The notes under the pieces: model-generated
The model's database searches: none
What the model saw: the letters and a program-made list of their open reading frames with translations, nothing else
What the model was told of the DNA's origin: nothing
Program-made: the position numbers and the translations under genes
Shown here: piece after piece, positions 12,344 to 41,079 of the stretch
Position numbering within the stretch: the first letter of the stretch is position 1
Layout of the letters: the number at the start of each line of letters is the position of its first letter
From: Chara braunii
Taxonomy: Eukaryota; Plantae; Charophyceae
Direction of reading: 5' to 3'
DNA: 64,000 nucleotides
NCBI GenBank assembly: GCA_003427395.1
Contig: BFEA01000005.1
Span: forward strand, 4,539,414-4,603,413

Positions 12344-13969
12344 TATCGCGCGTGGTGGTTTCACACCCTGTTGGGAAGTGCTGAACCTCACGGTCGTGTC
12401 ACGTAGGAGGTTTCTTCAGAGTTGTTGAAAAGAACCAGTCACCACTTTGACCGTGCGCGCGTGCTATACCTCTCACGACGCTTCACGACAGGTCGGGGCA
12501 TCGCGAGGTAAAACTTACCTCTACCCAAGGGGTTGTCACCACCCTTAGGTAGGAGTATCCCTGTTGATCTACCGACCCACATGCGAAGGTTTTTACTTGC
12601 CTTTGTAGAGGTAGGTCGGCCGAGGGTGTTTGCTAGATCATCGCAACATAGGAATGGGGTACGTGCGGTAAGACGCCTAAGACTGACCCGTTAATCAAGT
12701 CAAGTTCAGGATGTGATCTCCCTATCTCGAACTTCTAGATACTCAGGTCGAACTCTTATTAGGCTGTATATATCTCCTTCTGAATCAAAAATGTATTATT
12801 CTCCTACCAATGGAGAATAAGGTACCAATAAAATCATCTTACTACCTAGGGCATTATATCCTACTTAACTGGTCATGACTTAAATGAACATCAGATATTA
12901 CAAAAGTTAAATATGACAGATAATGAATATAAAGGTATTACTGCCAAGAACTCTTCCCACTTTCACAAGCGTTGTGTGTCCAAGACTCTTCACGAGATCA
13001 AACCCGGTTCAATCCAAACTACGCACAAAATAGACCTGCACAGAATAATGCAAAGACAGTTCACATGCCATGCACTAATGACGTCAACCATCAACCATTG
13101 ACCTTGTCCCCCACTTCCCAAAACCATGTATGACAACTCTATCTTTACTGAGACGTAAGCCCAACCCCCACACATTTCTTCGAAGGACCTTTGAGAGTGA
13201 CTACGACCATTTAGGCAATGACCACATGTGACGATTTTACTGACCACAGGGTTTGACTTTAGACGTGGGTATCAAGTCGAAGAGAGAAAAATTCAATCGA
13301 TAACAACCGACATGTTATCGAATGATAACATAAAGTTTGGATCCTTTTGTAGATCTTTTCTTTCAAATACAATAGTAAAAATGAGCCCAGACCTGCACAC
13401 ACATAGGTTAACGACAATTCAACATCCCCTCCTAGTTTTTCACCCATCATTTCCGAGGGTCGGACCCTCAGATGAAGATCACAAACCCTGGAAACTATAT
13501 CTTAAGGTCCAATTCCTACTACTACTCCTACAAACCTTCCAGTCTGTCCCTTTCTCCTTTTCAAGGAGTCCTTTTCAAGGAGATTCATACCCACGTTCTA
13601 CATCGTTTAAAAAAGAACCTTTTTTTCTTTACTTCCAATCCTCTCATTTTCTCTCATCCGGGTAAGCACATTCCTTCTGGTGCTTATGTGGTAGTCTGGT
13701 TGAGATCAACTCATGACAGTGGTGGTTTCTCCCTCAGGAGTTTATCACTGAACTGAGGTTATGCGAAACTTCTTCTTTTCTAATTATTTTTCCCCACGGT
13801 ATTTACCATTTATTCTGTTTTTTTTCAGGGCATTTGGAGTCACTCCCGCCAGAGCACTCACTTTTTTCTTTCTCTTCTTCTTATCCGGACATACTCAAGT
13901 AGCTGACTAATTTACATGGGAATCTTCCACAACTTGATCAATTCCAGACAAAACGGTTAGTCAAACGAG

Positions 13970-15370
13970 TAGTCGAGTAGCCCCACGGGAGCACTCAACC
14001 ACCCTTCAAAATTCATGCAGTCTTTATGCAATCAATCTTTTGGAACCATCTTATGCAAAAAACCAGATAACTCACATGAGAGTATCTCTTTATTAGTTAC
14101 AACAAGTAGTTGAGAAGACCTTGTTGAAGCACTTCCAACACTTGTTCTAACATTCATCAACAATTCAGATCATCTCTTTATAAAAGATCAGTACAAAATT
14201 CAAATCAACAATAGGTGGCCTTCACGAAAGTCCCCTATTATTCCTTTATCAGAGATCAGTCTATTCTTAAGAGCGTAATGGGATAGCCCCACGGGAGCTA
14301 CCCTACTACTTTCTCAGAGTTAGACGAGCTATGATTGAGTTAGCAAACACAGACAAACACTAGGTCCTCCTTTTGCTGGAGTATCCTACTGGGCTTGTTA
14401 AGGTAGAACCAAGCAATCAATAGGATGACCCCTCGGGAGTCTCTCTATTCCTTCCTTGGGTAGTAAATAGTTTATCTTTAGAGTATGACCCTGGGGTAAC
14501 ACACAAAAATTTACCTATTGCCTACTCGATGAATAAATAACCCAGGTGTATGTAGGTTGTCAGAGATTGAATAGTAAGGTGATCTCTTTCCTTTTCTTGT
14601 GTTAATAACCAGCTCAGGTTCGAGCTTGTAATGGAATGACCCCACGAGAGTTATCCTACTACTACCAGAATGACTGCGAATACCATTCCTTTGATCAAGC
14701 GATAGGACGACCCCACGGGAATCTCCCATAACCTCATTCAATGTTAAACAGATAGATCGTTAGTAACTACTCATGTCATCCATCAGTCATACCCAAACAA
14801 GTAGTAGGGTTACTCACCCGGGAGTATCCGTCTACTGTCCAAACACAGTCACCTCATTTCTTTTCTCGTTACTTGATCTTCAGCTCAAACAAGTATTTAG
14901 AACGACCCCACGGGAGTTATCCTACTACCAGTTTGTTGCGTCAGAGATCAGTCAAAACAACTCTTAGTTAAGTTGTTCTGACCGTTCACCTACCTTGCCT
15001 AGGCATCGTGAATAAGCAAGAGGTATGTCAAACCCACGGGAGTTCTCACCCCTCTTGGCTTTCGCTATGCATATTTCAGCTAATGGCGGAAATAGTTTGT
15101 ATGAAACTGTTTCCTCACCTTCTTCTCAATTCCAAGCAGACCATTCAATTGGAGATAAGGTAGTTCCCATGGGAAACCCCCTTTTCCCACCTTTTAGTCG
15201 GATGGATCGTCCTAGACTTAGGAGTTTGTGTACTCACGCGGTGAGTACTTAATTCTTTTCCAAATCTAGTCCGATAGGTGATAGGAGAGCCCCACGTGAG
15301 CCTCCTACTACCTCTGTTTACGTTAGTCGTCCGAGCCTAGAAGCCATGTACCCCACGGAAGTACCGGATT
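13970..15370 (-). repeat. Hairpin array 1: >=12 interspaced units with core CCCCACGGGAG (plus strand)
   Basis: Cores at about 13981, 14287, 14429, 14489, 14640, 14711, 14813, 14906, 15033, 15166, 15233, 15290 and 15351, with self-complementary flanks that differ between units. Confidence 0.85.
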
Positions 15371-16959
15371 ACCTTCTAGGTGTAGTTCGTAAGGTAACAA
15401 AGAAAACGCACGACAACTTTCCGTCACCAACGCTGGAGCCAAACAAACATTTCATCAGTTCGTTACTTAGTCGAGTGAAATGGCAGGGTAATTCGCATGA
15501 GAGTATCCCATCATTCACCTTAGTCAGTTCATACAAGCAGTGTGATGATTTTACAGGAGCCTCCATCACACGACTTTGTCTCTCAAACCCAAGCAGACTA
15601 GGTTCCTTCTTCGTTCTCCTAGGTTCCTTCCTTACTTCAGACAAGGTTCTTACTTCATGCATATGTTAATTCACCCTTTCTGAAAGTTTTACTCCTGAAA
15701 AAAAAAAAAAAAAAAAAATGTATAGCACACACTCATTCATGCAGTCTGATAGAGAGTTGTAACTGGTAAGGGATAAGGGAAAGGATAAATCCATGCGTAC
15801 CTTATGGTTCCCTGCCTCCAGAGTTCCTCCTGAACTCCGACAAAGCACTCGCAATCGCCCTGTATTCGGTCAAGTATGATCTATGCAATTGATTGTCTGG
15901 ATCTTTTAAAGTAAAAAAAAAAAACAAAGTTATCTTCAGCGGGTGTACATCATCAGATACTTCTAGTCGAGAAGTCAAGTGCCTTAAGGATAAGAATGGA
16001 GGAGAATGGAGGAGGTAGCCACCATCACACATCGATATTGTCTCTCTCCTCTCCAATGCCTCGTACTCTCTTCCTCTCTGACCTCTATTTATCTGATGAT
16101 GTTTTAATAGTGAAACAACAACCAATAATAATTAAAAAAAATAAAAAATAAAAAATAATAATAGTAGTATCAGAAGGTAAGCGTGCAAAGGCGAATGAGA
16201 AATCCCAGATTACGAAATCACATTTGAAAGCCAGAAAGTCCGACACTGTTCAAAAAGTAGTAATGCACCACTTCTACACCAACGGAGAATTAGGATACCG
16301 CATCAAATTGTCAATGGGAGCACATTCTCGTCGTCACCAACATAAGTATTCAGATTCCATCTCCATACTTGGTGCTCGATGCTCAGACTATTGACGTGCA
16401 ACCAATGTCGGTCTACGATTTGACATTGCACCCAGTTGACATCATGAAGATGCCGACCCTTATAGACCACTGGCAAGATCAGGTACGTGGCCTTTCTTTT
16501 TTCATTCTCACCTTTCTCTTTTTTTTTCTCTGTGCGTGCGTTTGTTTGTTGGTGTCTACCTGTCTATTTGCCTGTTTGTATCTGTTTTGTATTTGTCTCT
16601 CCTCTCTTCTCTAGTTCTGATAGTGATACAATTAAAATAGTTTTCACGTTTACAGTAGCAGATGCAGTTCCCAGGCTCGATCCCTCACCCATGTATAGTA
16701 TCACTTGTGGGTGCGAGCTTGAACGGTAAGTCTGAAGATTAGAGGTCCGAGTAGTGGTAGAAGTAGTAGCTACTATAGTTCCGAAGGGTCCAGTGCGCAG
16801 TCCTCTGGAAGCTCCGGAACAGACCCTCCATGAGCCCAAGGATGCAGTCCGTAGGCAGGTGGTCAAGTGGGCAGTCCTTCCCAGTCTAGTCAGCGGTACC
16901 CAGTCCTGGTCGCACTCTGTCAAGTCAGCAAGTACCATGTCGGACTGTGTGCACCCCGG

Positions 16960-17510
16960 TTCTTTCTCCCTCCTCTTATTCTTCTCATTCTTCTACCTCC
17001 GTACGTGCATCTTTATTGGCCCCACCTGCTACCTCTTTCTCTGTGTCTGTCTGTCGCAGTTTGTCTGTCTATATCAGTCTGTCCGACTGTTTGTGTCCAT
17101 TTGATTGACCAGCTGTGTCTGTTTGGTTGCCTGACTGTGTCCATCTATTCATTTGTTTGTCTGTGCCCATCTGTTTGTTTGTCTACCGGCGTCCGACTGC
17201 CTTTTATTCGCCTGCGTTGTCTGCACCTGTCTCTTTTTCCTCCCTTCTTTTCTCTCCCTCTCTCTCTTGTGTCTGTCGTCTCTTTTGTCTGTCGTCTTTT
17301 TTGGCTGTCGGTCTGTCACTGTCCGTCTGTCTGTATTTGTCTGCCTGTCTGACTGTATGTTTGTTTTGTATCCGTATGTTTTTGTCCGTGTCTGTTCGTC
17401 TTGTTGAATTGTCTACTTGTCTGGTTGTCTGTGTCCATCCGTTTGTTTATCAGTCGGCATCTGTTTGTGTTTGTCTCTCTTCTGTTTGTCAAACTGTGTT
17501 TGTACCTACC
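16960..17510. repeat. Degenerate (GTCT/GTTT)n low-complexity tract
   Basis: Direct reading; similar tract at 63415-63915. Confidence 0.85.
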
Positions 17511-17783
17511 TTTGGGACATTATTCTTGCCTGTGGAACGACCCTTTTGCTCGTGGGATGCGACTCTTCAATATGACTTTTCATCATGAGACGTCTCTGTT
17601 GTCTCTAAGATGTAACTGTTTGCTGAGTGGCAGTGAGTGCCTATTGGACTGGATTGCTCAGGTACCCGACTGTGACTTTCTGAATTTGACGAACTCGGCC
17701 TCTCTTGAGGAGGGCCTCTGTCCCTGAGGCCCGAATATGGGGCCTGAATCGTGGAAGGCCTTTTCAATGATATCAACAACAAT

Positions 17784-17843
17784 CAATAGTAATAATAATA
17801 AAATAATGATAAAAAAATAATGATGATAAATAATAATAATATA

Positions 17844-17915
<72 letters not shown>
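17784..17915. repeat. (AAT)n microsatellite
   Basis: Direct reading. Confidence 0.95.
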
Positions 17916-18377
17916 TCTAAAATAAAAGTAGTTGCAAGAAATACGAGTGTGAACGATATAAAAAAAAACAAGTTGCGAAGTCACACAGATGTCCAAGTAC
18001 TTATGTAGGCGCAAAGAGTATAATTGCACCGAGAATCCATCCAAATAGAGCAATATAATGAAGTAATGAGCCAATGTTCAAGCCTGCAGGCCACACCAAC
18101 AAAGTATCCAAAGTCGCTCCTCTCTGTCTGGCACCCAACACCTAGCCTACTCTACTTGTCTATCCTACCTACAACTGTGTTCACTCAACGAGCTCTCTTC
18201 GACTCTCGAAGACCAATGTACATGATGTCAACTCCATAGCCGACCTCTCTTCATGCACCAGGTGCGTATCTCGTCACGCTCATCATACCTTGATACCCCA
18301 CACTCGCCTCTTTCTTGGAAGACCACTAGATTGCCTCTTACCCCCTCCGTGCATGCACCCCCTACTCTAGTGATTCG

Positions 18378-18495
<118 letters not shown>

Positions 18496-20421
18496 TGCAT
18501 ACACACATATACCTCTTCCCTCACACGCAGACCATCGCACATATGCCTCTGTCAGACTCAAATACACGTGTAGATGAACCAAGGAACTCTCACATTCTCT
18601 CCCTTCTTACCGTCTTATCTCGCATTCCCTCAGTGCCTGCTCATTATCTCAACGTTCACAGTCGAGGCGCACGCAGCGATTTGCAACAGTCGGGCCAAAA
18701 ATAAAGCCAGGACACCCAAGTCGGAAACCACAAGGCGTGGATTACAATCGGCTGAATCAGAGCGTCTTTGCCAATTGTTTGACCGACGACGTTACACTCT
18801 CTCTCCTTCTCTCTCGCTCTTTCTTCTCAACACTCGTTCTCTTTCTTCTGTTGCGCACACAACGCCAAAAAAAAAATAAAAAAAAATAAAAAAAAAAATA
18901 AAAAAAAAATAATAACAATAATAATAACAGTAATATAATAAATACTAATAAGACAATTCAATTGTAATAATAATAATAAATAATAATTGAATAACTTTAT
19001 TATAATACGATAGTGATAAATGTATACTGGATATCTCTCTGGTTCAATACACCAATGTCGGGTGTTCCGTTCAAGGGAAAAACATGCGCGACAGCGGTAT
19101 CATCTAACAACAGGTACGACTTGCTTTCTCTCAAACACACACACACACATACGTGTAGGCGTGCATTCCTCCATATTCCAGCGGTAGATTCGTTCGATTT
19201 TGCTCATCCTATGTCGCGTTGTTAGCCGCGCGATCAGCACATACGCACACACACACGTATAGCAATGTATAGTTCCCTGCTGTAGCGGTAAATTTGTTCT
19301 ATTTCACTCATTTCATCGATAGAAGTAGCGTTAGACCAACCGAGGGGTTGAAGTACGTAATTTTCCATGTTCTAGTCGTAGATACATTCGATGTTGCTCG
19401 TCCTATCGTTGAAGGTAGCGTGAGGTCGTGGTGATTCACATACACGCACACACACACATAAGTGTGAAGGATGTATATTTCCTTGTTCTAGCGGTAGATG
19501 CATTCGAGATTTCCCATCCCGTCGAAGAAAATACCCCAAGGTCACCTGCGAGTTTGAAGACTTACCTGCCGACCGCTGCTTTGCTCGTCCTACCGATGGA
19601 AAATTCTCCCTCTCACATTGCCTTCGTCGCCTGTCGTCAGCGCTCGACACCCCGTAAGCCTCCACCCTCACATATGGTAAGTAGCGAATGCGGTCAGGTG
19701 AGTATCCTCTCCCTCTCTCTCTTCTTCTCCTCCTCCTCCTTCTTTTTTTTTTTTTTTTTTTTTTTTTTTCTTCTTCTCTTGCTTCACTCGCAAGCCCGCA
19801 TCCATCCTGCGCTACCCCCGCGCCTATTTCCTCTCGTNNNNNNNNNNNNNNNNNNNNNNNNNNNNNNNNNNNNNNNNNNNNNNNNNNNNNNNNNNNNNNN
19901 NNNNNNNNNNNNNNNNNNNNNNNNNNNNNNNNNNNNNNNNNNNNNNNNNNNNNNNNNNNNNNNNNNNNNNNNNNNNNNNNNNNNNNNNNNNNNNNNNNNN
20001 NNNNNNNNNNNNNNNNNNNNNNNNNNNNNNNNNNNNNNNNNNNNNNNNNNNNNNNNNNNNNNNNNNNNNNNNNNNNNNNNNNNNNNNNNNNNNNNNNNNN
20101 NNNNNNNNNNNNNNNNNNNNNNNNNNNNNNNNNNNNNNNNNNNNNNNNNNNNNNNNNNNNNNNNNNNNNNNNNNNNNNNNNNNNNNNNNNNNNNNNNNNN
20201 NNNNNNNNNNNNNNNNNNNNNNNNNNNNNNNNNNNNNNNNNNNNNNNNNNNNNNNNNNNNNNNNNNNNNNNNNNNNNNNNNNNNNNNNNNNNNNNNNNNN
20301 NNNNNNAAAAGTAAAATAAAAAAATAAAACTAACAAAATCTAACGGTTAACCGCCCTAACCTGCCAAGTGTCGGCCTGCTGTACTCGACTTTAACTACCC
20401 AACAAACCTTAACTAAGACCG

Positions 20422-21215
20422 ATATTAAGGTCGTGGGTTTGAGCCCCGACCAAAAAAATGTTGCGGGGCTCCCTCACAAAAGGAGCTAGGTCAGGGGCCG
20501 AGTAGATTCGTTCTCTGCACCCTGTGCTTGACAGTCCCACACCTAAACCTACTGAGCTAGCTCCCACTTCAAGTAAAAGAGGAGCAGTTTAGTATAAATA
20601 TAGTAGCGGGGCTCAGTCCGACCAGTGGCCTGAACCCGTTTTTCTAAGTTTGTGTCTGTGTACGTTTGCTGGTATGCATGCCTGTCTGAGTGCTTGTTGG
20701 TCTTGAGTGTGTGTGTGTCCTGCAAGGGCACTTGGTTGATCGGATGGCCCGAAGGGACGGTACTTACCCGCGGTCATGACATTGAGAGTTGCCGCGGGGA
20801 AGACACTCAAGTGATGGGGAAAGAGGTCTGTGCCACTTAGGAACGGCGGGAAAATACTCAAGTAGCAGGTAGACCGGTATCACCCTACTTAGGGGTAGGC
20901 GTGCCGGGTACTCAAGGCCTCGCTAAGGAAGACAACAGTTGTTGTTGTTGTTGTTTTTTTTTTCTTTTTTTTTAATTTTTAGAGGCCCAACACAGTTAGG
21001 TAGGCGGATACCAGTTCAAGTAGTCTGAGTTTAGGCCTTGTGCGGACGATATCAGAGGTTGATGTGGTGTTTCCCTCTGCAAAGGGACAAAGGCACCGGT
21101 CGTTCGGGTGGTCGCGTGGACACGAAGTCGCCGCTCAAGAGGCGATTTTCTCTCTACATATGGAAAGCTGAATGGTAGCCCCAACCTTACTCACGACATT
21201 CGAGTAAGACCAGAT
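20422..21215 (+). ncRNA. Putative structured RNA motif B, copy 1 (repeat-borne)
   Basis: Colinear homology with 34883-35635; conserved stems with GCAA loop; tRNA T-arm-like start AAGGTCGTGGGTTTGAGCCCC. Transcription not shown. Confidence 0.45.
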
Positions 21216-21674
21216 GTACCGGCTGTCGTCACCTATTATGGTAGGCAGTGTGTTTCCTTTGGCTGCCCCGGCCTTATGACCAGGGTTATATTAATTTTTC
21301 AGTCGTCCTTAGATTTTATGGCGGCTAGACCTGCCGACTTTCCGTACCGACCGGTCAGACGCTAAATTCTTTCGTATTTGTTTTACTGCCTGAAACTTCG
21401 CCTGTTTTAGCTCGTGGTCGCCGCATCCCGAGCGACCTTTTCTGGTTTTCTTCCAATCCTCCGTCCCTTGCGGGCGAAGACTTTTAACTTTTACTAACCT
21501 TTACCTGTTTTTTTACCTGACGTATCACGACATATGATCACCTAGCGACCTCATCCTTAATGGTCGAGAAATTTGCTTCATGGTGTCATGCCAAAAATTC
21601 TCAATTTTCACTTCAGGCTGCATCGAATGCAAAAAACATGAGCAAATACCCTTGTAAGGGTGTTTGCTCCGACA

Positions 21675-22239
21675 CCACTATCTCATTAGCGCTTGTGAGG
21701 TCGCTGACATCGTCTTCAACCGAATCGTGAGAGATCACGGCTTACCTCAGAGCATCATCTCCGACCGTGATCCGTGCTCTACGAGCACATTATGACAACG
21801 CCTACATGAGGTGTACGGATCCCAGCTCCGCTTCTCATCGTCTTACCACCCTTAGACATATGGTCAGACTCAGATCACAAATAGAACTCTCGGGAATATC
21901 CTCCGAAAGTTTATTCAGGATGACCAGTAGTGAGACTTATACTTAGCCAACGTGGAGATTGCGTACAACCACGCAGTTTTGCTAGCCACGAGGAGGTTGC
22001 TATTCTATTGCGAACTCGACTAGCACCCTTGCGTGCCCGCGGATTTCCTCTGACTGTCGCAGTTGCGCCCAGACACTTCTTGTTTTGCGCTTGACGACTA
22101 GATTGCCCACATGGCGGCGATTATGAGGCGCTCATACGAGAGTCTAGCTGACACCTAGACCCGCATGGCCGCACGAGCGAACCGATCACAAATGAATCAT
22201 CCATTCAAAGTCGGCGACGATGCGCTCGTCGACAAACGC
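21675..22239 (+). mobile_element. Chromovirus pol part 2 (integrase core to HPFKVGD)
   Basis: IISDRDP, SSYHP, EIAYNHA, ANRSQMNHPFKVGDDALVDK; bounded by two TGTCG-family insertions. Confidence 0.9.
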
Positions 22240-24438
22240 TGTCGGTGCGAATACCCTTACAAGGGTATCCGCCCTGTTTTTTTGCATGCGACAAAGAATA
22301 GGTTTGGTTTAAAATTTAAGTATTCCGCGCGAGGTGCAGCTGCGGCGATGTGTTTACGACGACTGGATGGTTGACTAGAATAGAGAGTGTGTGGGCGCGC
22401 GGACTTTTGAGGCACGCGTGATCTTTTTATCTGTTGGTGATTGAGGGGTCGGCGTGATCGCCGGTCATAACTTTTTTCTTTTTCTGATTAGGCTATGATT
22501 AAAAAATTTTATGTCCTTGATTGACGTATTTGCTTGTGACTTGTGAGTACGTACGGAGGACGGCGTCGACAGCGACAGTGCGATTTTGTGCGGTAAACGG
22601 AGTATGCGAGGAATAGAAACGCGGGCCGGGTTTCCGCGTGTTTGATTGCAGGAGCTTGGCGGGCGTAGAGTGTTGACGGCCAGGTGCGGGCCTCTGAGGC
22701 CTAGGGGTGCACGGCCGCGTTGAGCACCCGACAGGACCTGTGAAACCCCCCCCACATCGGCCTCGAAGCCCTCATCTGAATAATTGCTGCTACCACCAAG
22801 ATCCGCGACGGGGCCTGCTGCACTTGGGACCATGCTACGGGCATGCGGCAGGGACGTTCCGCCGACACTGCGGCCATTGTCTGTGTTTGAGCTGCCCATA
22901 GGAGGCTTGAAAGGGTAGTAAGCCCCACCTGAACGGAGCGGACTAGATGGGCTGCGGTGGAGGCCGCAGCGGTACTAACGTGCCTACCCTTCGCCGGACT
23001 TGGGTACAAGGGGCAAAGGACTACCGTCCAGTAGCTGGTTCCCTCTGGAGTTTCCTTCTGGAAAGTCGGAGCTGCTGAGCGGTTTCGTTGCTCGGCCGAT
23101 GGGACTGAGAGCCTCACTGCCACCCATTGTTAAGGATCAGCTCGACAAGTGAGAGTTACCACTCCTTGGTGGCCTCGATTTCGTGTCGTCGAACACACTC
23201 TGCGGTGTTTGGACTAGCACACAGCGGAGCAGCGACCAGGGGCGGAGCAAGAAAGTGGCCAGGGAAAGACGAAGGCAGAAGGGTGAATCTGGGCCCGAAG
23301 CTGCGCCGGATGCATGCGGGAGAAGGAAGAACACAGTGACGAGCGCAGGAGAGCGGTAATGGGCAGGAGAGAGGCGCTGAGCAGGGAGCAACGATAGACC
23401 GGGCGGGCGGAGCCTGGCAGAGTACGAGGAAATGGCGGGAGTGGGCTGGAGGTGAGGTGCGATCGCGCCCAGCAGAACAAGGGCGGTGTCTAGGCACAGA
23501 TGAGCAGCGAGCAAAAGGGGCCGGGGAGTCAAGAGTGGCTGACTGCGCGGCAGCGAGAGCGAGAGGAAGACAAGGCGAGGCAACGAATGAACCTAGACCG
23601 GGATAGCGTCGGGGTGCGTACGGAGGAGGAAAGTAGGACAAGTGGGTGAGTGGAGCAAGGCCCGACACAGCAAAGACGGGTGAGTCTGAACGGGATCCTT
23701 GCTAGGCGTGTGCGCGGTGAAGGGGAGTGGAGTGTAGAGTGAACTTGGACCGGGAAGCACGTCAGGTGCTTACGAGCACTACGGGCTATGGTGGGCGTTG
23801 GGCAGAGCATCGTGGGGTGTGCATATCTCACTCGATTTTTGCCAAATCGGGTGAGTAGAAGGGCGATCCTGGGCTTTTAGGCTCGGGCGAATCTGAATCT
23901 GACCTCGGCGTAGGAGATGGGTTAGTGATTCCGGAGGTTAGTGAAGAAAGCCGTGCGCGGAGCTAAGGAGATGACAGGGAGAGGGGAAAGGAAGCATGCG
24001 TAGTGTGGTCAATCGGGAATGAAGTTAGTCAAAAAGAGGGGGCATTCCTACCGTTTTTTGGGTAGGCGAATCAGATTCTGAAGTCAGAATCGAAGGAAGA
24101 TCAGTAGAAACAGGAGTTAATGAGAAAGGTAGTGGGCGGGTTATGGCGGAAGCGAAGGAGGCGAAGAGTGAGAAATGCCTATCTCGCTCGTTTCCGGATG
24201 AAATGGAGCGGGAAAGGTCTTGATTTAGGGGTTTTCGTATACTACGAATCCAATGGTGGAGCTAGTTTTGAATGTCGAGGGTTAGTTTTTGTGCAGTGTC
24301 GATACGAAGCTGCGCCCAGGGGTGGAGTTCGACGAAGTGCTAATGCACCTAGTCATGTTCTAGAGTAAGGTTCATGGAGGTTTTGTTCGCCCTATTGAGA
24401 GAAGTAGCGTGGGGGCTAGTTGCGCTGTGCCTACAGAG

Positions 24439-24440
<2 letters not shown>
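22240..24440 (-). mobile_element. Hairpin-CCGACA end of a second TGTCG-family insertion (4-bp TSD ACGC)
   Basis: TGTCGGTGCGAATACCCTTACAAGGGTATCCGC follows ACGC (22236-22239). The matching TSD is GCGT (reverse complement) at 27948-27951. Right boundary uncertain. Confidence 0.65.
22880..23073 (+). pseudogene. Second diverged LSU rRNA fragment, same region as 7801-8031
   Basis: GGTGGAGGCCGCAGCGGTACTAACGTGC...TTCGCCGGACTTGGGTACAAGGGGCAAAGGACTACCGTCCAGTAGCTGGTTCCCTCTGGAGTTTCC matches the LSU rRNA core. Confidence 0.85.
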
Positions 24441-24526
<86 letters not shown>

Positions 24527-24527
24527 N

Positions 24528-24602
<75 letters not shown>
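24434..24602. repeat. (GA)n microsatellite containing a single-N contig join at 24527
   Basis: Direct reading. Confidence 0.97.
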
Positions 24603-24606
<4 letters not shown>

Positions 24607-26039
24607 AATACTTATCTGGCCGGGGCGCATCCAGGAGAAGGTACTTCAAGTGCAACATGTTTTAACGGACGAATCCTTACCTTCTGGCTTATTGCAGTAG
24701 GCGGACTGCAGAACAGTGGTTGAGTATCAACCTCATGAATCTTCCCGAGTTTTAAGGGAGATTCATTCTTATTTTGTATGTTTGGCAAGACAACGAAACT
24801 CTGGCTATAGCCCTGCTCTCGCTGATGTGATCACAACGTCAGGCTGATCACAACCAGGCTGCTCGTTGTGATCGTCATGCCGTCATTATCCCGAGTGTGT
24901 ATGTCGAACCCCTCGTCCTGTGCGCTAACTCAGACACCACGACCTCGGGTAGACAGAACAGGTGATGTGGGATGAGCCGAGAAGCGAGCTACGGAGGCGC
25001 ACTGCAGTGCGTCGAAAGCTTCATTCCGATTGTGTTCATCTCGACGCTTGGAGCAAGAAGGAGCTTGCTTGGAGGGAGGGGATTGGTGAAGTCAGAGAAT
25101 GGTGGTTGCTGATTGGTGGAGCAGCTGGTTTGTGAGCTACGGCTTACTAAACTGCTGCAGTGGGCTGCCGCACTAGGCTTTGGCTGCGCTGAGTGTTGCT
25201 GCAGTATACCGCTATCATGCCCTTCTGTGACGTGATTGCGGGCCGCCGTTACCATACGGACTTGTTGTGACCGTACTCGAATGAAGCACAGGGAAGTGCT
25301 CTATTAGGAGGGGCCTCCCTGGACTGTGTGGTTGATCGAGAGAGGCAGCACCATGGCCTGAGGTGGCGATCAAGTATCGGCGAAGGAGTGGCTTGCAAAT
25401 AGAGTAGGTGATCAAGCTCGGATAGAGGGTGTTATTGTTGCGAAGTGGGAGGTCGTCAGAAAGTCAGCAACTAGTGGTTCGACTTCAGTTGACCGGCGGC
25501 TGCGTGTTTTGGCCACCATTGGGGGGCCCTCAGGCGACTGAAGGATTCAAGGCCCTCTCTTGGGAGTTGAGTTGTCCCCCTCTTGTGTCTCGAGCGTCTG
25601 AAACCCCTTGTTCTGCCTTTCTTACTCTAAGTCTGGTCTACTTGGTCCTGAGAGGAAGGCGGCAGGCGGGATTGCAACCCGTAGGCCCGCAGCAAGGCCT
25701 TCGTGGGAGGTTACCCCACCGATTGCGGGAGCTCTGCCGGAACTCAGGAGGAGTTTTGGAGGCAGGGAATTGAGAGGTAACCACCCATCCCCCTCTATGA
25801 ACCCAGATTATAACCTTACATGTACTACCCATGGCATGATTTGATTGAGTATATGGCGTGCATCCCTGCTTTGACTTTTGTCTGGCCTTCAGGACACGAA
25901 TCGGATAAAGTAAAGGAGTGCATGCAAGTCTCAGTTTCAGTTTTGTTGATTGCCTGAAAGCATATTGTGAACAAAAGGGAAGTGTGTCTGGGAGGAAGGC
26001 AGTTTTGCCTGAAGTTTGGCTGGGTCATTAAGGCTGGGA

Positions 26040-26650
26040 GGTCCCCATAAGTTTGGGGAAACCCAACGCTTTGTTTATTTTGGATTGTGTGGAGCATCAG
26101 ACCGTTCTATAAGTTTAGGTGGTCTGATTGCTCTGGAGGCTGGGAAGTCCCCATAAGTTTGGGGAGACCTAGTGCTGTGAATTTGTATGGAGAATCAGGT
26201 CATTCTATAAGTTTATGTGATCTGGTTGCTCTGATTTGCGAGGGCTAATTGTGTTAGACTTTTTTGGGGGCCAGGTGCATTTTGTAAGTTTAGGTGCCTT
26301 GGTTGCCTTGGTTATTTTGGGGTTTCCTCTGTTTTATTTGGTTATGAACGAGGAGGTCTGAGCCGTTCTATAAGTTTAGGTGGCTCGGCCTCTTCCTGCT
26401 TTATTATGAGAAAATGAACTTGACAAAGGGCGGACCGTTCTGTAAGTTCAGGTGGTCTATCCCAATGCCACGCACATCCTGGATCAGAGAGGAACAAATT
26501 AGGCAGAGAGCCAGACTGTTTTGTAATTTCAGGTGGTCTGACTCAAAGCCCACAATGCTCGAACCCAAAGGTTATAATTTGGCTATATCTTATTATTATT
26601 CTATCTATGAACGAGCTAATCAGACCGTTCTATAAGTTTAGGTGGTCTGA
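26040..26650 (+). repeat. Hairpin array 2: 29-bp repeat CAGACCGTTCTATAAGTTTAGGTGGTCTG with 43-80 bp spacers
   Basis: Units start at 26098, 26196, 26272, 26359, 26431, 26512 and 26621; short variants TCCCCA-TAAGTT-TGGGGA at 26042 and 26148. Confidence 0.92.
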
Positions 26651-26770
26651 CTATAGCGTATCACAACCTGAAGAGAGTATAATTAAGAGTATAACTGAAG
26701 GTAACTTGGGTTGACTTAGCATTGTTTCTAAGATGAATGACTCAGTCTTACACCCCCTTTGAAGATTAAG

Positions 26771-26806
<36 letters not shown>

Positions 26807-27179
26807 GGCTATGTAAACAGTTTAGGGCGACTAGAATGACCTAGTCATATGCCCAAAGAAGACCATCAGGACGGGTAATGCTCGACAAAAGGGTGACACC
26901 AGGCAGGGTCGACCATGAATGGGGATTCTAGAATAGGATGGACGTATGCCTAATTGAAGGCATGCAATGGCCTGTACTAGGGTGATGATGGATGTAGTGG
27001 ATGGGGGAAACATACACAACTCATTGACTGGGGTAGGGAGCTAGATCTGGGAGCAGGGAAACCAAGATAACGCTACGGTCCTAATGCCTATGAGATACCG
27101 AGGGAGATCCCAACTCAGGGAGACCCAGCTAAGTGAGAACCGTCATTCGACACATACGAGGGAATGTACAGGGTAGGGA

Positions 27180-27951: not shown

Positions 27952-28693
27952 TGTCGAGCGCATCGGTCCGGCACCGCACGGGGCAGCGCGGGACCCTCCC
28001 GGTTGCGTCACGCAGGAGTTGGTTTAAATCCTTCGTCGCAATATACATGGAGTTTCCGCAAGCCGCTCCGTCCGAGTGCGCCATCCATACCTTCTGCGAA
28101 CCCCTACGACAGGATATGGCCTACGCGAGGCACGACTTACCTCCACCTTACGGGAGTTGTCACCTCCCTTCGGTGGGCGTATCCTCGTCGAGCTACCAGT
28201 CCGCAGTACGAAAGCTAATCAGCTGCAATCGCAGAGGTGGACCAGCCGATGGTGTTTCTCGTTCGTTGTAGCATAGGGGGTACGCGCGGTAATACACCTC
28301 TATCGGACCCGGACGTGAACCGACATCTTGGGGGGGCTGAGGTCCCAAGCGCGACTCGTCATCGGTCGGCTAGGACGTATCCCACAAACCACGCGGACAC
28401 CACTCTACGAACACAAAAACGAAAACACACACCCACACACATCGAAACAACGCGACAACACTCCTAGTCCCGTCAGTAGTCATCCCATAACTTTCCGATG
28501 CGGAAATCGGATAGACGTCGCGCGCGAGACTTAATATAAAACCGCGCGGACACAGGGCTAACTCATATCGATTCACAATGCAGACATACGCAAGCGGTCG
28601 CAATGAAGGCGTACTACGTAGTACCCATACTCACCCGATCCTCGTTAATCTTGAGGGTCGCGTTCGACACTCAAATGTCGACTGACACGCGCC
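27952..28693 (+). mobile_element. Motif-A end of TGTCG-family element, copy 3
   Basis: TGTCGAGCGCATCGGTC terminus; colinear with the reverse complement of 36041-36710 over ~700 bp. Confidence 0.8.
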
Positions 28694-30089: not shown

Positions 30090-31923
30090 AGTAAAAAAAT
30101 TGAACTCAGAAATGCAGGAATCGAAACTAATTCCTATGACTCTAGCACGTCGCGAGCGACTAAAGCAACTACCTATCAAACTGAAACTCGGACCAAGTTG
30201 TAGCCTCACTCATACACATGCAGGTCAAACCACAAAGGTAAGTATTCTCACCATCCCAAAATATACCTGAACAAACAATAGTTCATGATCTTTCAATGTT
30301 TTATCCCCTTATACCCAGCTTACATAAGGCATAAGGTCAGGGCAACCTATGACTGAGGGATTAAAAGTTTTTAAACTTTAGTCACGACGCTTGTAGCATC
30401 CGAGAGTAACGATAATAATTGGCAATGCTTCACTTTTGTCGAGGTCGCAGAAGAGCGAGGACATGGAAATGCTAGAGTTAGACCTACCCTACCCAAAATA
30501 ACAGCCTCACAATTTAGGGCCTAGGTAGGCTAAAAAGAACGGTCGCGCCAGGCATGGGGCCGCGACGTGGAAGGAATATGAAGTTTTTTTTATTATTTTT
30601 ATCTCTTGGGCTGCGGGGCTTGACCTCGAGCGAGGGGGGGTCAGCAGTCCGATGCCGAGGCCTACCCGTTGAGTGACCCCGAAGCCGTGGATGGGCAGCC
30701 ATCCACGTGAAAGTGGTAGACAGGCATAAAGGCGAGGCCTGCATGGCCGCAGTTAGGCGGGGTCTGCAAGACCTCTGGCAGACAGTGGCTGCAAGGCCAC
30801 AGGCAGGAAGGATGCCCAAGGCCAAGCTCTTCTTATAGAAGAGCGGCTCCTATCATCGTCATGATAGGAGGTACCCTAGTAGGTTACAACACCAGACTAC
30901 TACCCAACAGACACCAAGATCGAATCGGATATGCCGCGCCCTACTGGGCATAGCTCCTGTTGGGAGTTGTCACATTCACAACCAAGTGGCGCGGTCGATC
31001 TCGAAGATCGCCCGACCGAGATCAGGTGCGTGCGGATTAGCATGTGCCCTACGCAAGGATGATAAGCATATATCGGGGGGNNNNNNNNNNNNNNNNNNNN
31101 NNNNNNNNNNNNNNNNNNNNNNNNNNNNNNNNNNNNNNNNNNNNNNNNNNNNNNNNNNNNNNNNNNNNNNNNNNNNNNNNNNNNNNNNNNNNNNNNNNNN
31201 NNNNNNNNNNNNNNNNNNNNNNNNNNNNNNNNNNNNNNNNNNNNNNNNNNNNNNNNNNNNNNNNNNNNNNNNNNNNNNNNNNNNNNNNNNNNNNNNNNNN
31301 NNNNNNNNNNNNNNNNNNNNNNNNNNNNNNNNNNNNNNNNNNNNNTTTTTTTCCTATTCTATTAATAATTTGATTTATTAGATATTTATTTCCTATTTTG
31401 GTATCATATACTATTTATGTCTATATTCTATGTATATTTATTATGTATATTTATATCCATATTTTCATATTTTTCTTCGAATCCGAAAGGATTCGATCTC
31501 AGGTCTGGATTTTAGGGGTTGTGGCTGAAAAGCCACGTGAGGTGACGTGCCCGTTGGCCTAGGCCAACGGAAAAAGGTAAGGGAAAAAAAAAAAAAAGCA
31601 AAAATTGAAGCGCCAAATGCCGCACTAAAAACTAACGGGGACTTAGAGTCCCCATGAAGGGCAACAGGTGTCATTTCACAAACGACTGTTTTTCCCTATA
31701 AGCTATTTTTTTTTCTTTTGTTTTCTTTTTCTTTTTTTCTGTAGATTTTTGTTAGATTTCGTTTTCTTAATTTCGTTCTTAGATTCTTGTTTTTAGATTC
31801 CTTCCCCTCACTTCTCGTTTGAACTGTGTTAGTGTCCATTCATTTTTACGAACGAGCCTTTTCCAATGAAGGGATGAACGAAATCGCATGTACCCATCCC
31901 TAGAACATGGAACTGTTCATTCC

Positions 31924-33779: not shown

Positions 33780-36040
33780 TGATTTTTTTACAGCTTCTTA
33801 ACGATTGATTTTGCTCATCGTATCGATGGAAAACTCTCTCTCACTTACACACACAGGGTTGTAGAAGTGTATTCTTCGATGTTAAGTGGCAGATTCATTC
33901 ATTTTCGATCATCCTATCAATGGAAATTTCGGGCAGTCAGCTGTAGTTTGAAAACTTACATGTTTTATCTCTATTCCCCGTCGCCGTCGCCAGCTAACGT
34001 AGCTCGATGCCGTTGTGAAAGCCCTCTAAGAGAGTCGAGTAGAGGTCCGATTTGCACTGAAGATTCTTCAATTGACCACCAGAAAACGACTCGCCCGTCC
34101 CTCGCAAATTGGAAACCATACAAAGCATGTGTAGAGAGTCCCTCGTATCTCAAACACAAGGTCCCAAAACCCATGCCCGAAACGTCGTCATCACCGACTC
34201 CAAGGGGTAAGTTGTCCTCCCCATCCTCTGTCTTCTTCTTCTTCTTCTTCTTCTTCTTGCGCGCCGTTGCGAGCGCAAACACGAAGTCATTACCATCACA
34301 AAGCCGTAGTCGCTCTCCCCAAAACTTTACGGAATGAGAGTGCTGAAGTTGAGCTTCGGTGACAGGCACCGCCTCCACCATCTGCACCCCCGGGAGGTCG
34401 CCATCATTCGTCCACAACGCCAGGTAGGTCACCCTCTTCCCTCTCTCTCTCCTTTCCCGTCTTCTTTTTTTTCCTTGCACTCACTCCCCTCCGACTCGTG
34501 CCACCTCTATGCGATTCTCCTCTGATCGCCCTTCCTTCCACTCGTGAGGGCAGTCCTCCTCCTACTTGCTTCCAAGCCCCTCGTGTTCATGTGGACACAG
34601 CGCGATCAAGATTGCAACGAGATCTCACTAGAAAACCTTTGATTCACTCCTCGCTGAATCTGTCTGTTTTTTTAGACAGATTCAGTAACGTGAATATACG
34701 AAAACTACATACGGGAATGGTTAAACGAGACGAAAATAAAGAATACAACACAAAAGAAAGACGAATCTATAACTAAATAATGAAAATAAAAATAAAATAA
34801 ATAAATAAAAGGAAAATAACCCAACAACTAACCCCCCCGTTGTACCAACTGTCACCACGGACTCTAACCGTAACAAGTTCTAATATCAAGGTCACTGGTT
34901 CGAGGCCTGGCCGACCGAAACCTGGGCGAAATACAGTTGAGCTCCTCGTAAAAAAAAAGCTAACTCAGGGGTCGATAGGCCTCGATCCCTACCTCCCCTG
35001 TTTAGCGAACAACACCTAAGCCTACCGAGCTAGCTCCCACTTCGAGTAGAAGGGAAGCAACTCTAATATGTATAGGGTCGTGACTCAGTCCGACTAGTGG
35101 CCTAAGGCCGCTCTAAGTCTGAGTGCCTGTCTGAGTGCTTTACCGGCTTGAGTGTGTGAGTGACCCGCAAGGGCACTTGGTTGATCAGAAGGCCCGAAGA
35201 GCTGGTACTTACCTGTAGCCGTAACATTGAGGGCCGCAGTGGGAAAAACACTCTAGTGGCGGGGAAGACGACACACGATACTTAAGCTCAACAAAAATAC
35301 TCAAGTAGCAGGTAGGGCGGTACCACACCAAGTAGAGGTAAATGTGCCGGGTATTCGAGGTCGAGCAAAGGAAGACAAAAGTTGACATTTTTAGAGGCGC
35401 AGTACTGATAGATAAGCGGGTACCGGTTCAAGTAGCATGAGTCTAAGGCAAGTGCGAGCGATACCAAACTCCAAAATGATGTTTTCCTCTTAAAGAGACG
35501 AAAACACCAGTTGTTTGGGTGACCGTGTGGTCGGGAAGTCACCGTCCAAGAGGCAAACACCCCCTCCCTTCACATGGGAGGCCGAGCGAGAGCCTCAACC
35601 TCACTTGTGATATACGAGTAAGGTCAGAGGTACAACTCGAGCAAGTGCTAGCAATCCGGGTGCTACAACAAACCCGATGATCACACAATTTTAATCGCTC
35701 CAGCCGTATGGCCGGGGCGTACATTGGTTATCCTGACTAATATACTGATGATTAAGTCTCACTGTGCGTCGTAGATCTACCTAACATAACACTAATCCAA
35801 TCGACCCCTCGACCTCTTCGGTCGAAGGGCATTACTACCAATTCTAACCATCAGGGCGTGCATCTCAATAACACGCATGGATACTTAACGAAAATTTCTC
35901 ACCGATTTTCCCTAGCTTCAATGGTCGAGGAAATCGTTTCAAAGTGTTGTGTGAAAAACGCACGCGACTTGATCTTCGAACCAGCCCCGTCTCGGTAGCC
36001 GATGTCATCGTCGTGTCGATTGCAAAAGCATGGTCCGATA
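33780..36040 (+). mobile_element. Right-end segment of TGTCG-family element homologous to 19400-21674, containing motif B copy 2
   Basis: Colinear blocks, including AATGGTCGAG.AA and TCGA.TGCAAAA.CATG; ends CCGATA (mutated CCGACA) with the terminal hairpin deleted. Confidence 0.7.
34883..35635 (+). ncRNA. Putative structured RNA motif B, copy 2
   Basis: Homologue of 20422-21215; CCC-GCAA-GGG tetraloop; B-box-like GGTTCGAGGCC near its start. Confidence 0.45.
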
Positions 36041-36710
36041 GCGCGTGTCAGCCGGCACTTGAGTGCCGAAAGAAACCCTCGAAACCATTCAGGGCCGCAT
36101 AATTATGGGTACTATATAGTACGCCATCACTGCGACTGCTTGCGTATTCATGCATGGTTAGTTGATATGACAAAGCCTGTGTCCTCGCGATATTTATTTA
36201 AGTCTCGCGTGTGACGTTCAACTGCTCCCTGTGGTGAAAAGTTACGGGTTAAATATAAAAAGGGACTAGGTGCGATTTGAGTGTGTAACTTGATTTTTGT
36301 TTCAGAGTGGTGTACTGCACGGTTAGATGGACCGTCGTAGTCGACCGAGGTCGAGTCGCGCATGGGACATCAGCCCCCAGAGCGTCAGTTATCGTACGGG
36401 TCCAATAGAGGCGTGCGACCTCGCCTACCCCCTATGCTACAGTGTATGAGAAACGCCACCGCGATTGCAACTGAGCAGCTTTCGCACATGGTTCGATAGC
36501 TAGCGGGGGATAGCTCTGTCCATGGGTGGTGACAACCTCTTAGGCAAAGGTAAGTTGTACATCGCGTCACCCTATCCTGTCGTAGGGGTTCGCGAGAGGT
36601 ATGGCTGGCGCACTCGGTAGGGGAGGCGAAAGCTCCACCACAAAAAATCCTGCATAAATCCTGCGTGACGCGGTCAGGAAGGTCCCCTTGCGTGACCGAT
36701 GCGCTCGAGA
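36041..36710 (-). mobile_element. Motif-A end of TGTCG-family element, copy 4
   Basis: Minus strand starts TCTCGAGCGCATCGGTC; motif A core at 36398-36615. Confidence 0.8.
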
Positions 36711-39142
36711 GGTGGCGTCCTTGTCGGGGATCTCGGTACACTTTTAATGGTTTCCTTACCTTTGCGCTTCCTTTCTCTCCTTACTGTGATCGACTCCAAG
36801 ATTTTCCGTTTTGTTTTCTTCTTGTCTTTTCCCTAGCTATTTCTGACACCTAAGACTCTATCCCACCTCCTTTTTATAGGTCTTTCATAAGATTCTCCTC
36901 TCTCATAAGTGGACGGCCTAAACTCCTTCATGGACTCTATTGAGGGCTCTTCTAGAGGTTCTACATGTTTCTCCTCAACCTTCTCCTTTCCGTTCTCCTT
37001 CTTCATAATCAAGCGAGTCTCCTTGCTCTTTAAATGCTTTTAAACGAGCGCCGGACACCGGTTCCTTCCATCTAGCCTCATCCAACTCCTCTAGCAGGTA
37101 GGCCCGCCTTCTAATCTTTTAATCACGCAGTAGGGCCCCATCCATCTGTTCGCTAGTTTCTTTGTCCATGTTTTCTTCATAGCAGAATCATAGAGTAACA
37201 CTAGGCTCCCAATAGGTATTCCTGCCTACCTAACCATAAGGTTTTTATCCACATTTCTTTATTCTTTCCCCTTTGAATTTTCAGCTTTTCTATAATGTCC
37301 AGGGTGCTATTCTCGAGTGTCTCACCTATTTGTCTAATCCTATCACCTAGTAACTGCTCCCTAGTCGATACCTCTTTCTAGTCAATCTTCGGCCATGAGT
37401 CCATGCAGAATTCTATGGGTAAAGGGCAATGTCTCCCGAACCATAAGGTGTAGGGCGGGTACCGAGTGGTGGATCGAACAGTAACGTTATCTACTCAGAC
37501 TGCGAATCGCAGATACTTTGACCACTTCTTCTTTTTTCCCTTGCACCACATCCACTAGAGATTGGTGTCCCCTTTCAACAGGGGCGTTAGTTTGAGGGTT
37601 GTATGTCGTGGACAATGAAACTCGGATTCCCGCTCTTTGGAGCAACGTCTGGACTTCTTTAGCCATGAACTCGGACCCCCTGTCCATGACGATCTTCCGA
37701 ACACACCTGTATCGAGTGATATTTTATATCAGAGACTCACTAACCGCTTTTCCCGTCTTTTGACACAGTGCCCATGCTTCTACAAACCAAGTTAGGTCGT
37801 CTTTGATATCCATGATAAAATTCATTCCTCCTTCACCTTTGGGCATCTTGACTAAGTCCACGTGAACTTTCTGCCCTATCGCGGTCCGATAGGAAGGGAA
37901 CAACGACCTCTTGTATTTAACAGTGACTTTTTTATGACATTCCACGCATGTTCGGCAATAGGACTCTACATCTCTATATAAAGCATCCCACCAGTAAAGA
38001 TTCCGGACCTTCTCAAAGGTCCCTCTTACCCCTCTATGACCCCCAATGATCCCACCGTGAAGCTCCGCTATTATTTCTTTCTGCTCTCCCTCATCGCAAA
38101 CTATCCTCATCGGCATATCGTTCTTAGGTGGTCTCTTAAAGAGGTGGTCTTCCTTAAGACAGTACAACTGAGCTTTCTTCTTGAGCTTATCATCGACCTC
38201 AATCTCCTGTAAGATATTTTTCTATTTGGTAGTACTTAGCGGTACATAGGTTCTCTAGGAACAGAGAGGCACCACTAGTACATGGCTCCATCTTCAACGA
38301 ACCTATTTCCATCTGCAAAATCTTATCAATCCCTCCGGGCGATCCCAAGTTTCCTTCTTCCAGCGGGATCCACGACAGCCCATCCGTTACCGAGTTTTCA
38401 GCCCCAGATATCCGCTCAACGATATAATCGAACATCCTTCTGTGAATGAGCCACCTAGTTATCGTATGGTCTGTCAAAGAGAAGTATTTTTATAATACAG
38501 CAACTACCGCCCTTGGGTTGACCTGCAAAACGAATCTCCATCCGTAAATATAATGTCGAAAGACATTCAAGCGATGCAGCACCCCGAGAACCTTTTTCTT
38601 AAACTGTAAATATTTTTTCTTGGTGGTGTTCAATGTTTTACTCTCGAATCTAAGGGGCTTTTCCTTACCATTAGGGTTTTTTTGAGTCAAGATTCCATCG
38701 ACGGATGTCGTCCCAGCGTCGGTGCATACCACAAACGGTCTCTTCTCTTCATCCTCGAAATAAGGAACATCTAGGACTTGACCCCCTTCCTTAAACTCAT
38801 CCTTCAACACTTTTACCACGTCCTCTTGTTCATTCTTCCATTTCCATTATACCCCTTTACGTAGTAGCCTTCTCAACGGCTCTGTCTTTTCATCGTACCC
38901 TTTTATGAAATTCTTCCAAAACCCGACCACACCTAAAAATTGACATATGTTAGTAATATGTCGAAGCGGAGTAGGCCTGTTCATAAGTTTTTCTAGCTTT
39001 GACGGGTCCGACCGCCTGCTGTTTTTGTCACAGATATAGCTCAATATCCTGATGGAAGATACTGCCCACCTACTTTTGGTCCCACTCACCGTGAGATTCG
39101 CATCTTTTAGCTTCACTAGCACCTTTTTGATGTCGTCGGCGT

Positions 39143-40909
39143 CTGTGTGTCCAAACAACGGACAACGCGGGTCGTTAAATTTCGTTGAACCCCGTTGAAT
39201 CACCCCAGGGGCCCCACTGAATCCCGTTTAATGGAAAAACGGGGGTCTCCCGTTCAATCTGAAAAAACGGGATGGGTGCGTTGGGCCTCGGACAAGTGAC
39301 CCTATGCGCCCAAACAGTAAAAACAGGAAAAAAAAAAAAAGTTGACAGACAATACACAATGCCCAACACACAACCAACATGCCAAAGAAATATAGGAAAC
39401 ACAAAAAACGTTCCCAAAAAAGTTGAAGTATCAAAAAATAAACAACCGAAAAAAATAAAATAAAACTGATGATAGATTGTTTCATCGGAGTTGCACCGAC
39501 TCATCAGGAGGTTGAACCCTCAACAATCTACAAAATCTCCGTATTTGATGGTTTGGGTCATGAACCCTTTGACCCTTGTTGAAGGCAGACTGTCCCTAAG
39601 CGGAACATAGCAGCAGGCAACAACCTTGTGGAGCACCAGGCAACATAATAGAGGCAACACAGCTGCACAACGCCAAAAAACGACGGCAAGGAACGACATG
39701 GCACACAGGACATGCAGCGCAACAACTGTGTAGTGAAGCGCAAGGCAACACAAGCAAGGCAACCACACTGGAAGGGACGACAGAGCGAGTGGACCACCAA
39801 CCCGGCAACTGTGAAGCGATGCACAAGGAACTCGCAATAAGTCAACCACGAGCAAGGCCCGCAGGCAGCAACCACGGAAGGCACGGCCAGCGGAAGGGCA
39901 GCAAGGCAACGGAGCAGCGAAGCGCAAGGCAACACCAACAACACTGCCACACCACATAACGAACACATCAACTTGCAAAGAACCACATGTGAAGCAAGCG
40001 GGGCAAGCAGCAAGGCAGCGGCGAAGCGCAAACGAGGCCGTCCACACATCCAACACGGAGCAAAGCAGCGCATGACCTACTCACATCACGATTGAACCCC
40101 GCAGACTGTTGGTTCCCACCGCCCATTGAGCCAGGGATTCACTCCGACAAGCATCCGTCATCACCTACGGGCAACACAGACATCCCGAACTGAGCGGCCC
40201 CCATAAGAGTGCAGTCGACACTCCAAACGAGGAACCACCGACTGTTTGGCACTATTTAAGGGTGCTCAGTTAGGTAAGTAAAAATAGTTAGAAAAAGTAG
40301 AGGAAGAAATCAAGAGAAAGGAATTGGAAGAAAAACAGACAGCAAGAGGAAAAACAGACAGATATAAAACTGATTTTATGTGTGTGTGTGTGTTTATGTG
40401 TTTATGTGTGCTGTGTGTCTGTCGGACTATGTGTCTGTGTGTGTGTGCGTGTGTCTTTTTTTCCTTTTTTATTTGTTTCACTATGGTTTTGATTTTTTAA
40501 AAAATACCCGAAGTTCAAAAAAATAAAAATAAAATGTTGTTATAGATCTTTGAAAGATCTACAACCCTATAATTTTTATTTGTTTTTCTAGTTTTTTTTA
40601 ACCCTTAAAAAATCTATGTAACCCCCCCCCCAAAAAATACTCATGTCATTTTCTGTTTTAATTTTTTTCATTGTGCTTATGTTTTTATTTTTTTTTTAAT
40701 ATATTCAAAGATCAAAAAAAAAAAAAAAAAATATAGGGTTGCAGACCTCAAAACGATCTACAACCCCATATATATATATATCGTCACAAACAGAACTGCC
40801 CGGTAAACCGTAGGCAGAGAGAGAGAAGAGGACATATATATATATATACCTCGTTTGTTGTCCTCTTCTCTCTCTCTGCCTATGGTTTACCGGGCAGTTC
40901 TGTTTGTGA

Positions 40910-40948
<39 letters not shown>

Positions 40949-41079
40949 TTTTGGATTAGGTTTAGCCCAAGAAAAAAATCATTGCAGACCTCGTTTTTCC
41001 CTGTCTAACGGGCGTTTGAAAGGGGATTCAACGCGAATTCAACGCAAAACCCGTGTTGAATCCAAAATCGGACACACAG
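39143..41079. mobile_element. Non-autonomous hAT-type DNA transposon inserted in RT
   Basis: 10-bp TIR CTGTGTGTCC/GGACACACAG; 8-bp TSD GTCGGCGT (39135-39142) / CTCGGCGT (41080-41087); subterminal CGTTGAA repeats. Confidence 0.85.
40784..40909. repeat. 51-bp inverted repeat (MITE-like foldback) in a (TA)n tract
   Basis: Arms 40784-40834 and 40859-40909 with one mismatch; TA runs on both sides and in the loop. Confidence 0.9.

Follow-up and report, generated by a model that had tools for sequence, protein, structure and literature searches.

What could a short RNA-like block be doing when it stands, almost unchanged, ahead of two arrays of hairpins that have nothing in common with each other? 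This question is raised by a stretch of 64,000 nt of the Chara braunii genome (hereafter the window). It had been proposed, from the sequence of the window, that a 50-nt leader and the interspaced hairpins downstream of it form a non-coding transcript borne by a repeat, the hairpins being protein-binding or processing sites. The answer depends on the kind of element that carries the two modules, on how the leader and the arrays evolve and on what is transcribed.

Location of the modules in giant LTRs

Both modules sit midway in giant (~7-9 kb) solo LTRs, and both LTRs, hereafter A and B, are inserted in one chromovirus-type Ty3/gypsy element. The parts of these LTRs and the related sequences that serve to orient them are the following (positions preceded by L and a number refer to further Chara loci).

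22240-26855, + strand: 5' part of LTR A, starting with TGTCGG, with the left target duplication ACGC at 22236-22239, in the integrase region of the chromovirus-type Ty3/gypsy element; the 3' limit is approximate and comes from the alignment to locus L003
27952-30420, - strand: 3' part of LTR A, on an inverted segment; this part ends with CTCGACA, after which come ACGC and the resumed host; the upper limit is approximate
12344-21674, - strand: solo LTR B, 9.3 kb including a gap of 469 N, with a TGTCGG start, a GATA (for GACA) end and the target duplication GTGG
12444-12679, - strand: 3' structured motif, close to the end of LTR B and common to LTR A (28066-28300, - strand) and to an LTR ending at 36710
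36713-36730, + strand: primer-binding-site-like sequence of tRNA-Asp/Asn, Athila type (15/18), two bases behind the LTR end 36710

The identification as solo LTRs is based on termini of the TG...CA type (B ending with GATA), on the duplications GTGG for B and ACGC for A, and on the host sequence, which is uninterrupted at the insertion region in locus L008. The target duplications (22236-22239 and 21675-21678) measure 4 nt when CA is taken as the end of the LTR; a 5-nt duplication, the length with which Athila elements are scored, fits only when the terminal A is assigned to the target. The insertion sites of the two LTRs in this one host are no more than 570 nt apart.

The two parts of LTR A are joined in locus L003, where 26532-26861 is followed by the reverse of 30252-30334. 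In the window, the segment 26860-31000 is inverted relative to both the host element and LTR A, and has an AT run and an N gap at its borders. This inversion may be real or may be an assembly error, as a mate-pair adapter has been assembled elsewhere in the window. This junction adapter, an assembly artefact, is found at 43249-43286, flanked by a 168-nt duplication (43081-43248 and 43284-43451), and also at L011:19001-19041.

LTRs A and B are alike only in their 5' terminus, in the 3' structured motif and in the 50-nt block. The LTR start is 3.5 kb away from this block in A and 5.8 kb away in B, and the LTR end is ~3.5 kb away in both. Furthermore, the LTR ending at 36710 matches the 3' part of LTR A over 625 nt at 70%. 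The primer-site-like sequence behind this related LTR, recognised by comparison with the Athila-type motif (bioRxiv 10.64898/2026.03.20.713144), fixes the orientation of the LTRs, so that the strand of the arrays is the sense strand.

The LTRs of C. braunii resemble those of the plant OTA (Athila/Tat) elements, which have long LTRs of up to ~5 kb and repeat arrays (PMC6317226), by their TG...CA ends, the tRNA-Asp/Asn-type primer site on a related LTR, their very large size and their non-coding repeats. However, they reach 7-9 kb instead of ~5 kb, their duplication reads 4 nt and no pol is tied to them. An intact element with two such LTRs around gag and pol was found neither in the window nor in twelve further Chara loci. 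Nearly all proteins related to the nearby integrase are from Chara braunii. The window also contains a decayed Athila-like element (37000-50981, - strand), whose primer site at 50981 is near-perfect and which has long additional reading frames ahead of gag. Upstream of this element, no leader of the present type was found.

The leader hairpin

The structured blocks found within the LTRs are listed below.

25720-25769, + strand: leader A, with a two-tier 14-pair hairpin at 25732-25767, an AGGAG loop and a GGA bulge
15808-15857, - strand: leader B, with its hairpin at 15845-15810, inside an exon-like block (15902-15801) that follows a U-rich AG
25653-25776, + strand: exon-like structured block of family A, made of successive small hairpins, the last of which is the leader, and recognised from folds and DNA depth
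25494-25560, + strand: second conserved block upstream of leader A, transcribed from the + strand, with a DNA depth of 27k-59k and a stranded RNA depth of 14.5, matching L003:332-377

Recomputing the comparison of the two 50-nt blocks gave again 41 identical positions out of 50, with a BLAST E-value of 4e-9 for a comparison within the 64-kb window. As had been claimed, the differences preserve the hairpin. Around AGGAG, two pairs of the inner stem are compensatory (A-U to G-C and C-G to U-A), and the outer stem keeps 7 of its 7 pairs, using G-U wobbles. Neither BLAST nor a covariance model revealed a third copy in the window, weak matches at 52088 and 54518 being unconfirmed by the covariance model.

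The twelve further loci, which amount to 227 kb without N and were obtained through unrelated integrase proteins, contain one more leader, at L003:962-1011. In the three full copies (A, B and L003), each of the 14 pairs is formed in each copy (42 of 42 cells) and three pairs are changed on both sides. This covariation (20/500 shuffles, for three full copies only, two of them of one lineage) is no more than suggestive, and the double change of the L003 leader could be due to cytosine deamination. When the nine A/B changes were placed at random, all pairs were kept together with two double changes in 0.4% of the trials, the tested structure having itself been chosen from the A and B sequences. 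The 50-mer folded alone has a modest stability only (z from -1.6 to -2.1).

In family A, conservation extends 5' of the leader, a point absent from the original prediction, and the exon-like block so delimited measures 124 nt (123 nt in L003), its counterpart in B measuring 102 nt. The upstream hairpins of this block carry further compensatory pairs. The first of them (25670-25686; L003:910-926) has a compensatory pair and a loop with the palindrome UUGCAA, which would be a possible dimerisation site. Searches of Rfam, at the gathering score and with E-values up to 5, gave nothing relevant for the module, and a comparison by eye with the patterns of hammerhead, HDV-like, twister and kink-turn structures showed no fit.

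The hairpin arrays

An array lies downstream of each leader on the same strand, as stated in the original prediction, starting ~260 nt behind leader A and ~430 nt behind leader B.

26034-26652, + strand: array A, nine two-tier hairpins with a UAAGUU loop
13966-15380, - strand: array B, at least eight clear CUCC-CGU-GGGG hairpins and ~4 variants (~12 in all)

The units of the two arrays are unrelated, since a profile model of either unit has no match in the other array. In locus L003, an array of six hairpins begins ~270 nt behind the leader, and its six loops are all of the UAAGAU type where those of A are UAAGUU. With this copy, all three leaders found (A, B and L003) precede an array, and they come from two independent lineages.

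Units of both arrays fold far better than shuffled sequences (mean z of -3.5 each) and fold better on the strand of the leader than on the opposite strand. The covariation of the units is strong in array A (0/500 shuffles) and not significant in array B (49/500 shuffles, ungapped register). In array A, the loop is constant, the arms vary with compensation and many pairs are G-U. The spacers are irregular, from 7 to over 200 nt, low in complexity and U- or purine-rich; none of them has a match elsewhere in 290 kb.

Abundance of the leader

Family A and the L003 copy are 92% identical in the leader (46/50) and 79% identical in the 67 nt before it, while their flanks share only 57-67%. Genomic read depth at 80% likeness, which is not a copy number, reaches 167,000-416,000 over 25638-25781, the peak of abundance of the LTR, and falls ~300-fold in the adjoining bin; it is ~500-1,000 just behind the leader and 5,000-85,000 over array A, and the depth of exact single-copy pieces is ~10. 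From these values, we infer about ten thousand leader copies per genome, the depth agreeing in order with the three copies found in 290 kb. The 50-nt block could serve as a handy single probe to find and classify giant LTRs.

A short LTR (3.5 kb, L010:18358-21917), which belongs to the same superfamily, has the same 5' terminus and the same 3' motif, but neither a leader nor an array could be recognised in it. Patterns of the module had no match in the metagenome and viral contigs scanned.

Splice-site-like sequences and transcription

A feature absent from the original prediction marks the 3' limit of the conserved block. Conservation stops sharply at a splice-donor-like AG/GUA (the slash marks the putative cut), seven bases behind the hairpin. 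After five variable bases, AG/GUA is invariant in five flank variants, namely A, B, L003 and two read-derived consensuses.

25775-25781, + strand: splice-donor-like AG/GTAAC of family A, cut after 25776, at the same position in A, B and L003
15796-15802, - strand: splice-donor-like AG/GTACG of B, cut after 15801
30262-30280, - strand: acceptor-like site (U-rich tract, CAG/G) behind array A, with 30267 as the last intron base, conserved in L003 at 2026

For B, a candidate acceptor is located at 13036. The leader is transcribed in the sense direction: in the stranded poly(A) library X5, the leader side has 146 sense against 5.6 antisense, with the usual strand convention assumed. Relative to DNA depth, X5 RNA amounts to 3.5e-4 on the leader side and to 0.74e-4 over the array, a 4.7-fold drop that rests on 185 reads. 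The unstranded, DNA-like run X6 has no such drop (23 versus 26e-4); its two strands are equal and it tracks DNA depth. The X5 drop fits an intron that would contain the array, but it can also be due to expressed leader copies from families with other arrays.

Some reads run through the donor unspliced. No read was placed across a donor-acceptor junction, in a mapped region that excluded the acceptor, and the loose RNA ends behind the donor had no match among the sequences compared. It was also considered that the block could be an internal exon using an upstream acceptor. The DNA fits this possibility, but RNA passes through this acceptor-like site unspliced, and an internal exon is therefore not claimed.

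A putative mark of unspliced genomic RNA

The best reading of the leader is that of a cis-acting RNA element located near the 5' end of the transcript in a superfamily of giant-LTR Ty3/gypsy retrotransposons of Chara braunii, primed in an Athila-like way. We give a probability of about 0.5 to the proposal that the conserved site is the major splice donor and that the intronic array, through its family loop, marks the unspliced genomic RNA for packaging or export. The 14-pair hairpin would have its 3' foot seven bases before this major donor, which would open an intron that encloses the array. Spliced RNAs would lose the array and full-length RNA would keep it; as splicing would remove it from spliced RNAs only, the array could be a multivalent mark of unspliced genomic RNA. 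The loop (UAAGUU, UAAGAU or CGU) would be a family-specific mark for packaging by Gag or for nuclear export, while the slowly evolving hairpin would be the common part, controlling the use of the donor or binding a factor that serves all families.

What had been proposed holds in part. A non-coding and strand-specific leader common to repeat lineages with different loops is retained. The stand-alone leader-array transcript is unsupported, since the module is internal to giant LTRs and a donor-like site splits the leader from the array.

In HIV-1, the packaging hairpins SL2 and SL3 adjoin the major splice donor. A Gag packaging signal is the best guess for the arrays of Chara. Most likely, the module would work like a retroviral 5' leader such as that of MMTV, whose Gag reads a purine loop only in unspliced RNA (PMC8096270). 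Like this leader, it would present a chain of hairpins with a purine-rich loop beside a splice donor(-like site) near the 5' end, a layout able to tell unspliced from spliced RNA. Unlike it, the Chara module is internal to the LTR and so precedes the primer site, and its putative downstream signal consists of 6-12 look-alike hairpins with family-specific loops.

More tentatively, at odds clearly below even, the whole could be a modular system of RNA addressing in which a universal gate, made of the hairpin and the donor, is combined with an exchangeable intronic array, the loop being a family code read by the family's own Gag or by an LTR-encoded protein. If so, each family would single out the unspliced RNA that belongs to it from those of tens of thousands of relatives, and the system would be a natural counterpart of engineered multi-hairpin tags, with orthogonal loop-protein pairs. 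The means by which a plant Ty3/gypsy element recognises its own genomic RNA at packaging are a largely open question, and so are the ways in which a non-autonomous family makes use of the proteins of another family or evades them. About ten thousand copies combining a hairpin and donor with arrays of family loops would provide natural covariation data and a direct loop-swap test. Literature searches retrieved no description of arrays whose hairpins covary, keep a constant loop and follow a donor hairpin common to several families; the window adds that unrelated arrays share one leader and that this leader is the most conserved part.

Alternative explanations

The conserved donor could have another use. 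In foamy virus, the major splice donor is gated by RNA structure and lies inside the R region of the LTR (PMC3694450). By comparison, the hairpin and donor of Chara could control 3'-end formation: U1 bound at the donor would suppress premature polyadenylation in the long 5' LTR, an alternative fold would release this block on polyadenylation in the 3' LTR, and the array would be a separate platform for transcription, stability or anti-silencing instead of a mark for packaging or export. We regard this as rather unlikely, although several observations fit it. The Chara donor-like site, in the manner of the foamy virus donor, is embedded in RNA structure, is present in both LTRs and is located within the LTR, with 3.5 kb left to the 3' end; furthermore, a donor can act in this way without splicing, and unspliced reads through the donor are present. 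However, two observations fit real splicing: an acceptor-like site is conserved beyond the array, and poly(A) RNA is lower over the array than on the leader side. The Chara LTRs also differ from those of foamy virus by their length (7-9 kb) and by the array behind the donor. Such a control of polyadenylation and the marking of unspliced RNA by an intronic array are not mutually exclusive.

It is improbable that the block is conserved as protein, either as a small exon of a spliced gene carried by the LTR or as an antisense ORF, the hairpin being incidental. The exon-like blocks of L003 (123 nt) and B (102 nt) are multiples of three, and between A and B, one sense frame has four synonymous and three replacement codons, while in one antisense frame all replacements are conservative. 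However, the A block has 124 nt and no frame is favoured in both comparisons: with L003, none of four codon changes is synonymous in those two frames and a third frame contains a stop. In the frame IA.AL.E.RR..GGRE, which had been named as an example of possible codon conservation, two synonymous changes face five replacements. Of the four changes that separate the inner stems of A and B, most replace an amino acid, yet the four are exactly complementary, and compensatory pairs also occur in the upstream hairpins. Protein searches with frames over the leader and upstream pieces were blank or spurious, and no homologue was found in protein, Pfam or Atlas searches, which is weak evidence for pieces so short. 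Base pairing explains the substitutions of the leader better than codons do, and coding is disfavoured.

Equally doubtful is a module acting at the DNA level, i.e., a promoter or enhancer with palindromic protein-binding repeats whose hairpins would be a by-product mainly feeding siRNA production; a role of this kind has been proposed for the LTRs of Sireviruses. The position in the middle of the LTR and the TATA-like word behind the leader in L003 are consistent with it, and arrays of symmetric motifs are known from the cis-regions of LTRs. In the Ty1/copia Sireviruses, LTR palindromes have conserved arms and a variable centre and lie upstream of the TATA box (PMC4728375). These elements and those of Chara are plant retrotransposons with several hairpin-forming motifs per LTR that differ between families. 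However, the combination found in Sireviruses (arms more conserved than the centre, position upstream of the TATA box, Ty1/copia membership) was not recovered here. The Chara pattern is the reverse, with constant loops and arms that vary with compensation; its array is in transcribed sequence behind a donor-like site, its many G-U pairs make folding strand-specific and sense RNA covers the leader.

Lastly, a CRISPR-like array, whose transcript would be cut at each hairpin to release spacer RNAs as guides, is highly improbable: its likeness to the Chara module is one of appearance only (a leader, then interspaced hairpin repeats, the constant loop of which could be a cleavage mark), whereas the repeats are not identical since their stems covary, the spacers are neither of fixed length nor foreign, being irregular, low-complexity sequences unmatched in 290 kb, no read ends pile up at the hairpins in poly(A) libraries (which are blind to small RNAs), and the module belongs to a eukaryotic retrotransposon LTR with no associated nuclease or cas gene.

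Other features of the window

Decayed coding remnants that look spliced are present on the opposite strand upstream of both leaders, at 16200-16940 (+ strand) and 24620-25300 (- strand), and also at L008:14725-14927; each has a donor-like site, and no protein relative of them was found. The 3' structured motif occurs just before LTR ends across lineages, since it was also identified at 2891-3110, 36408-36624, L004:26648-26843 and L010:21651-21776. Another conserved non-coding block is located near the 5' end of LTR B (20539-21219) and recurs at 35012-35633 and L001:31086-31481. A piece of the chromovirus 3' region (3921-4529) is inverted compared with its copies in L002, L009, L010 and L012. 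At 7633-7996, a degenerate piece of U6 snRNA adjoins a piece of LSU rRNA, and the latter recurs in LTR A at 22965-23079.
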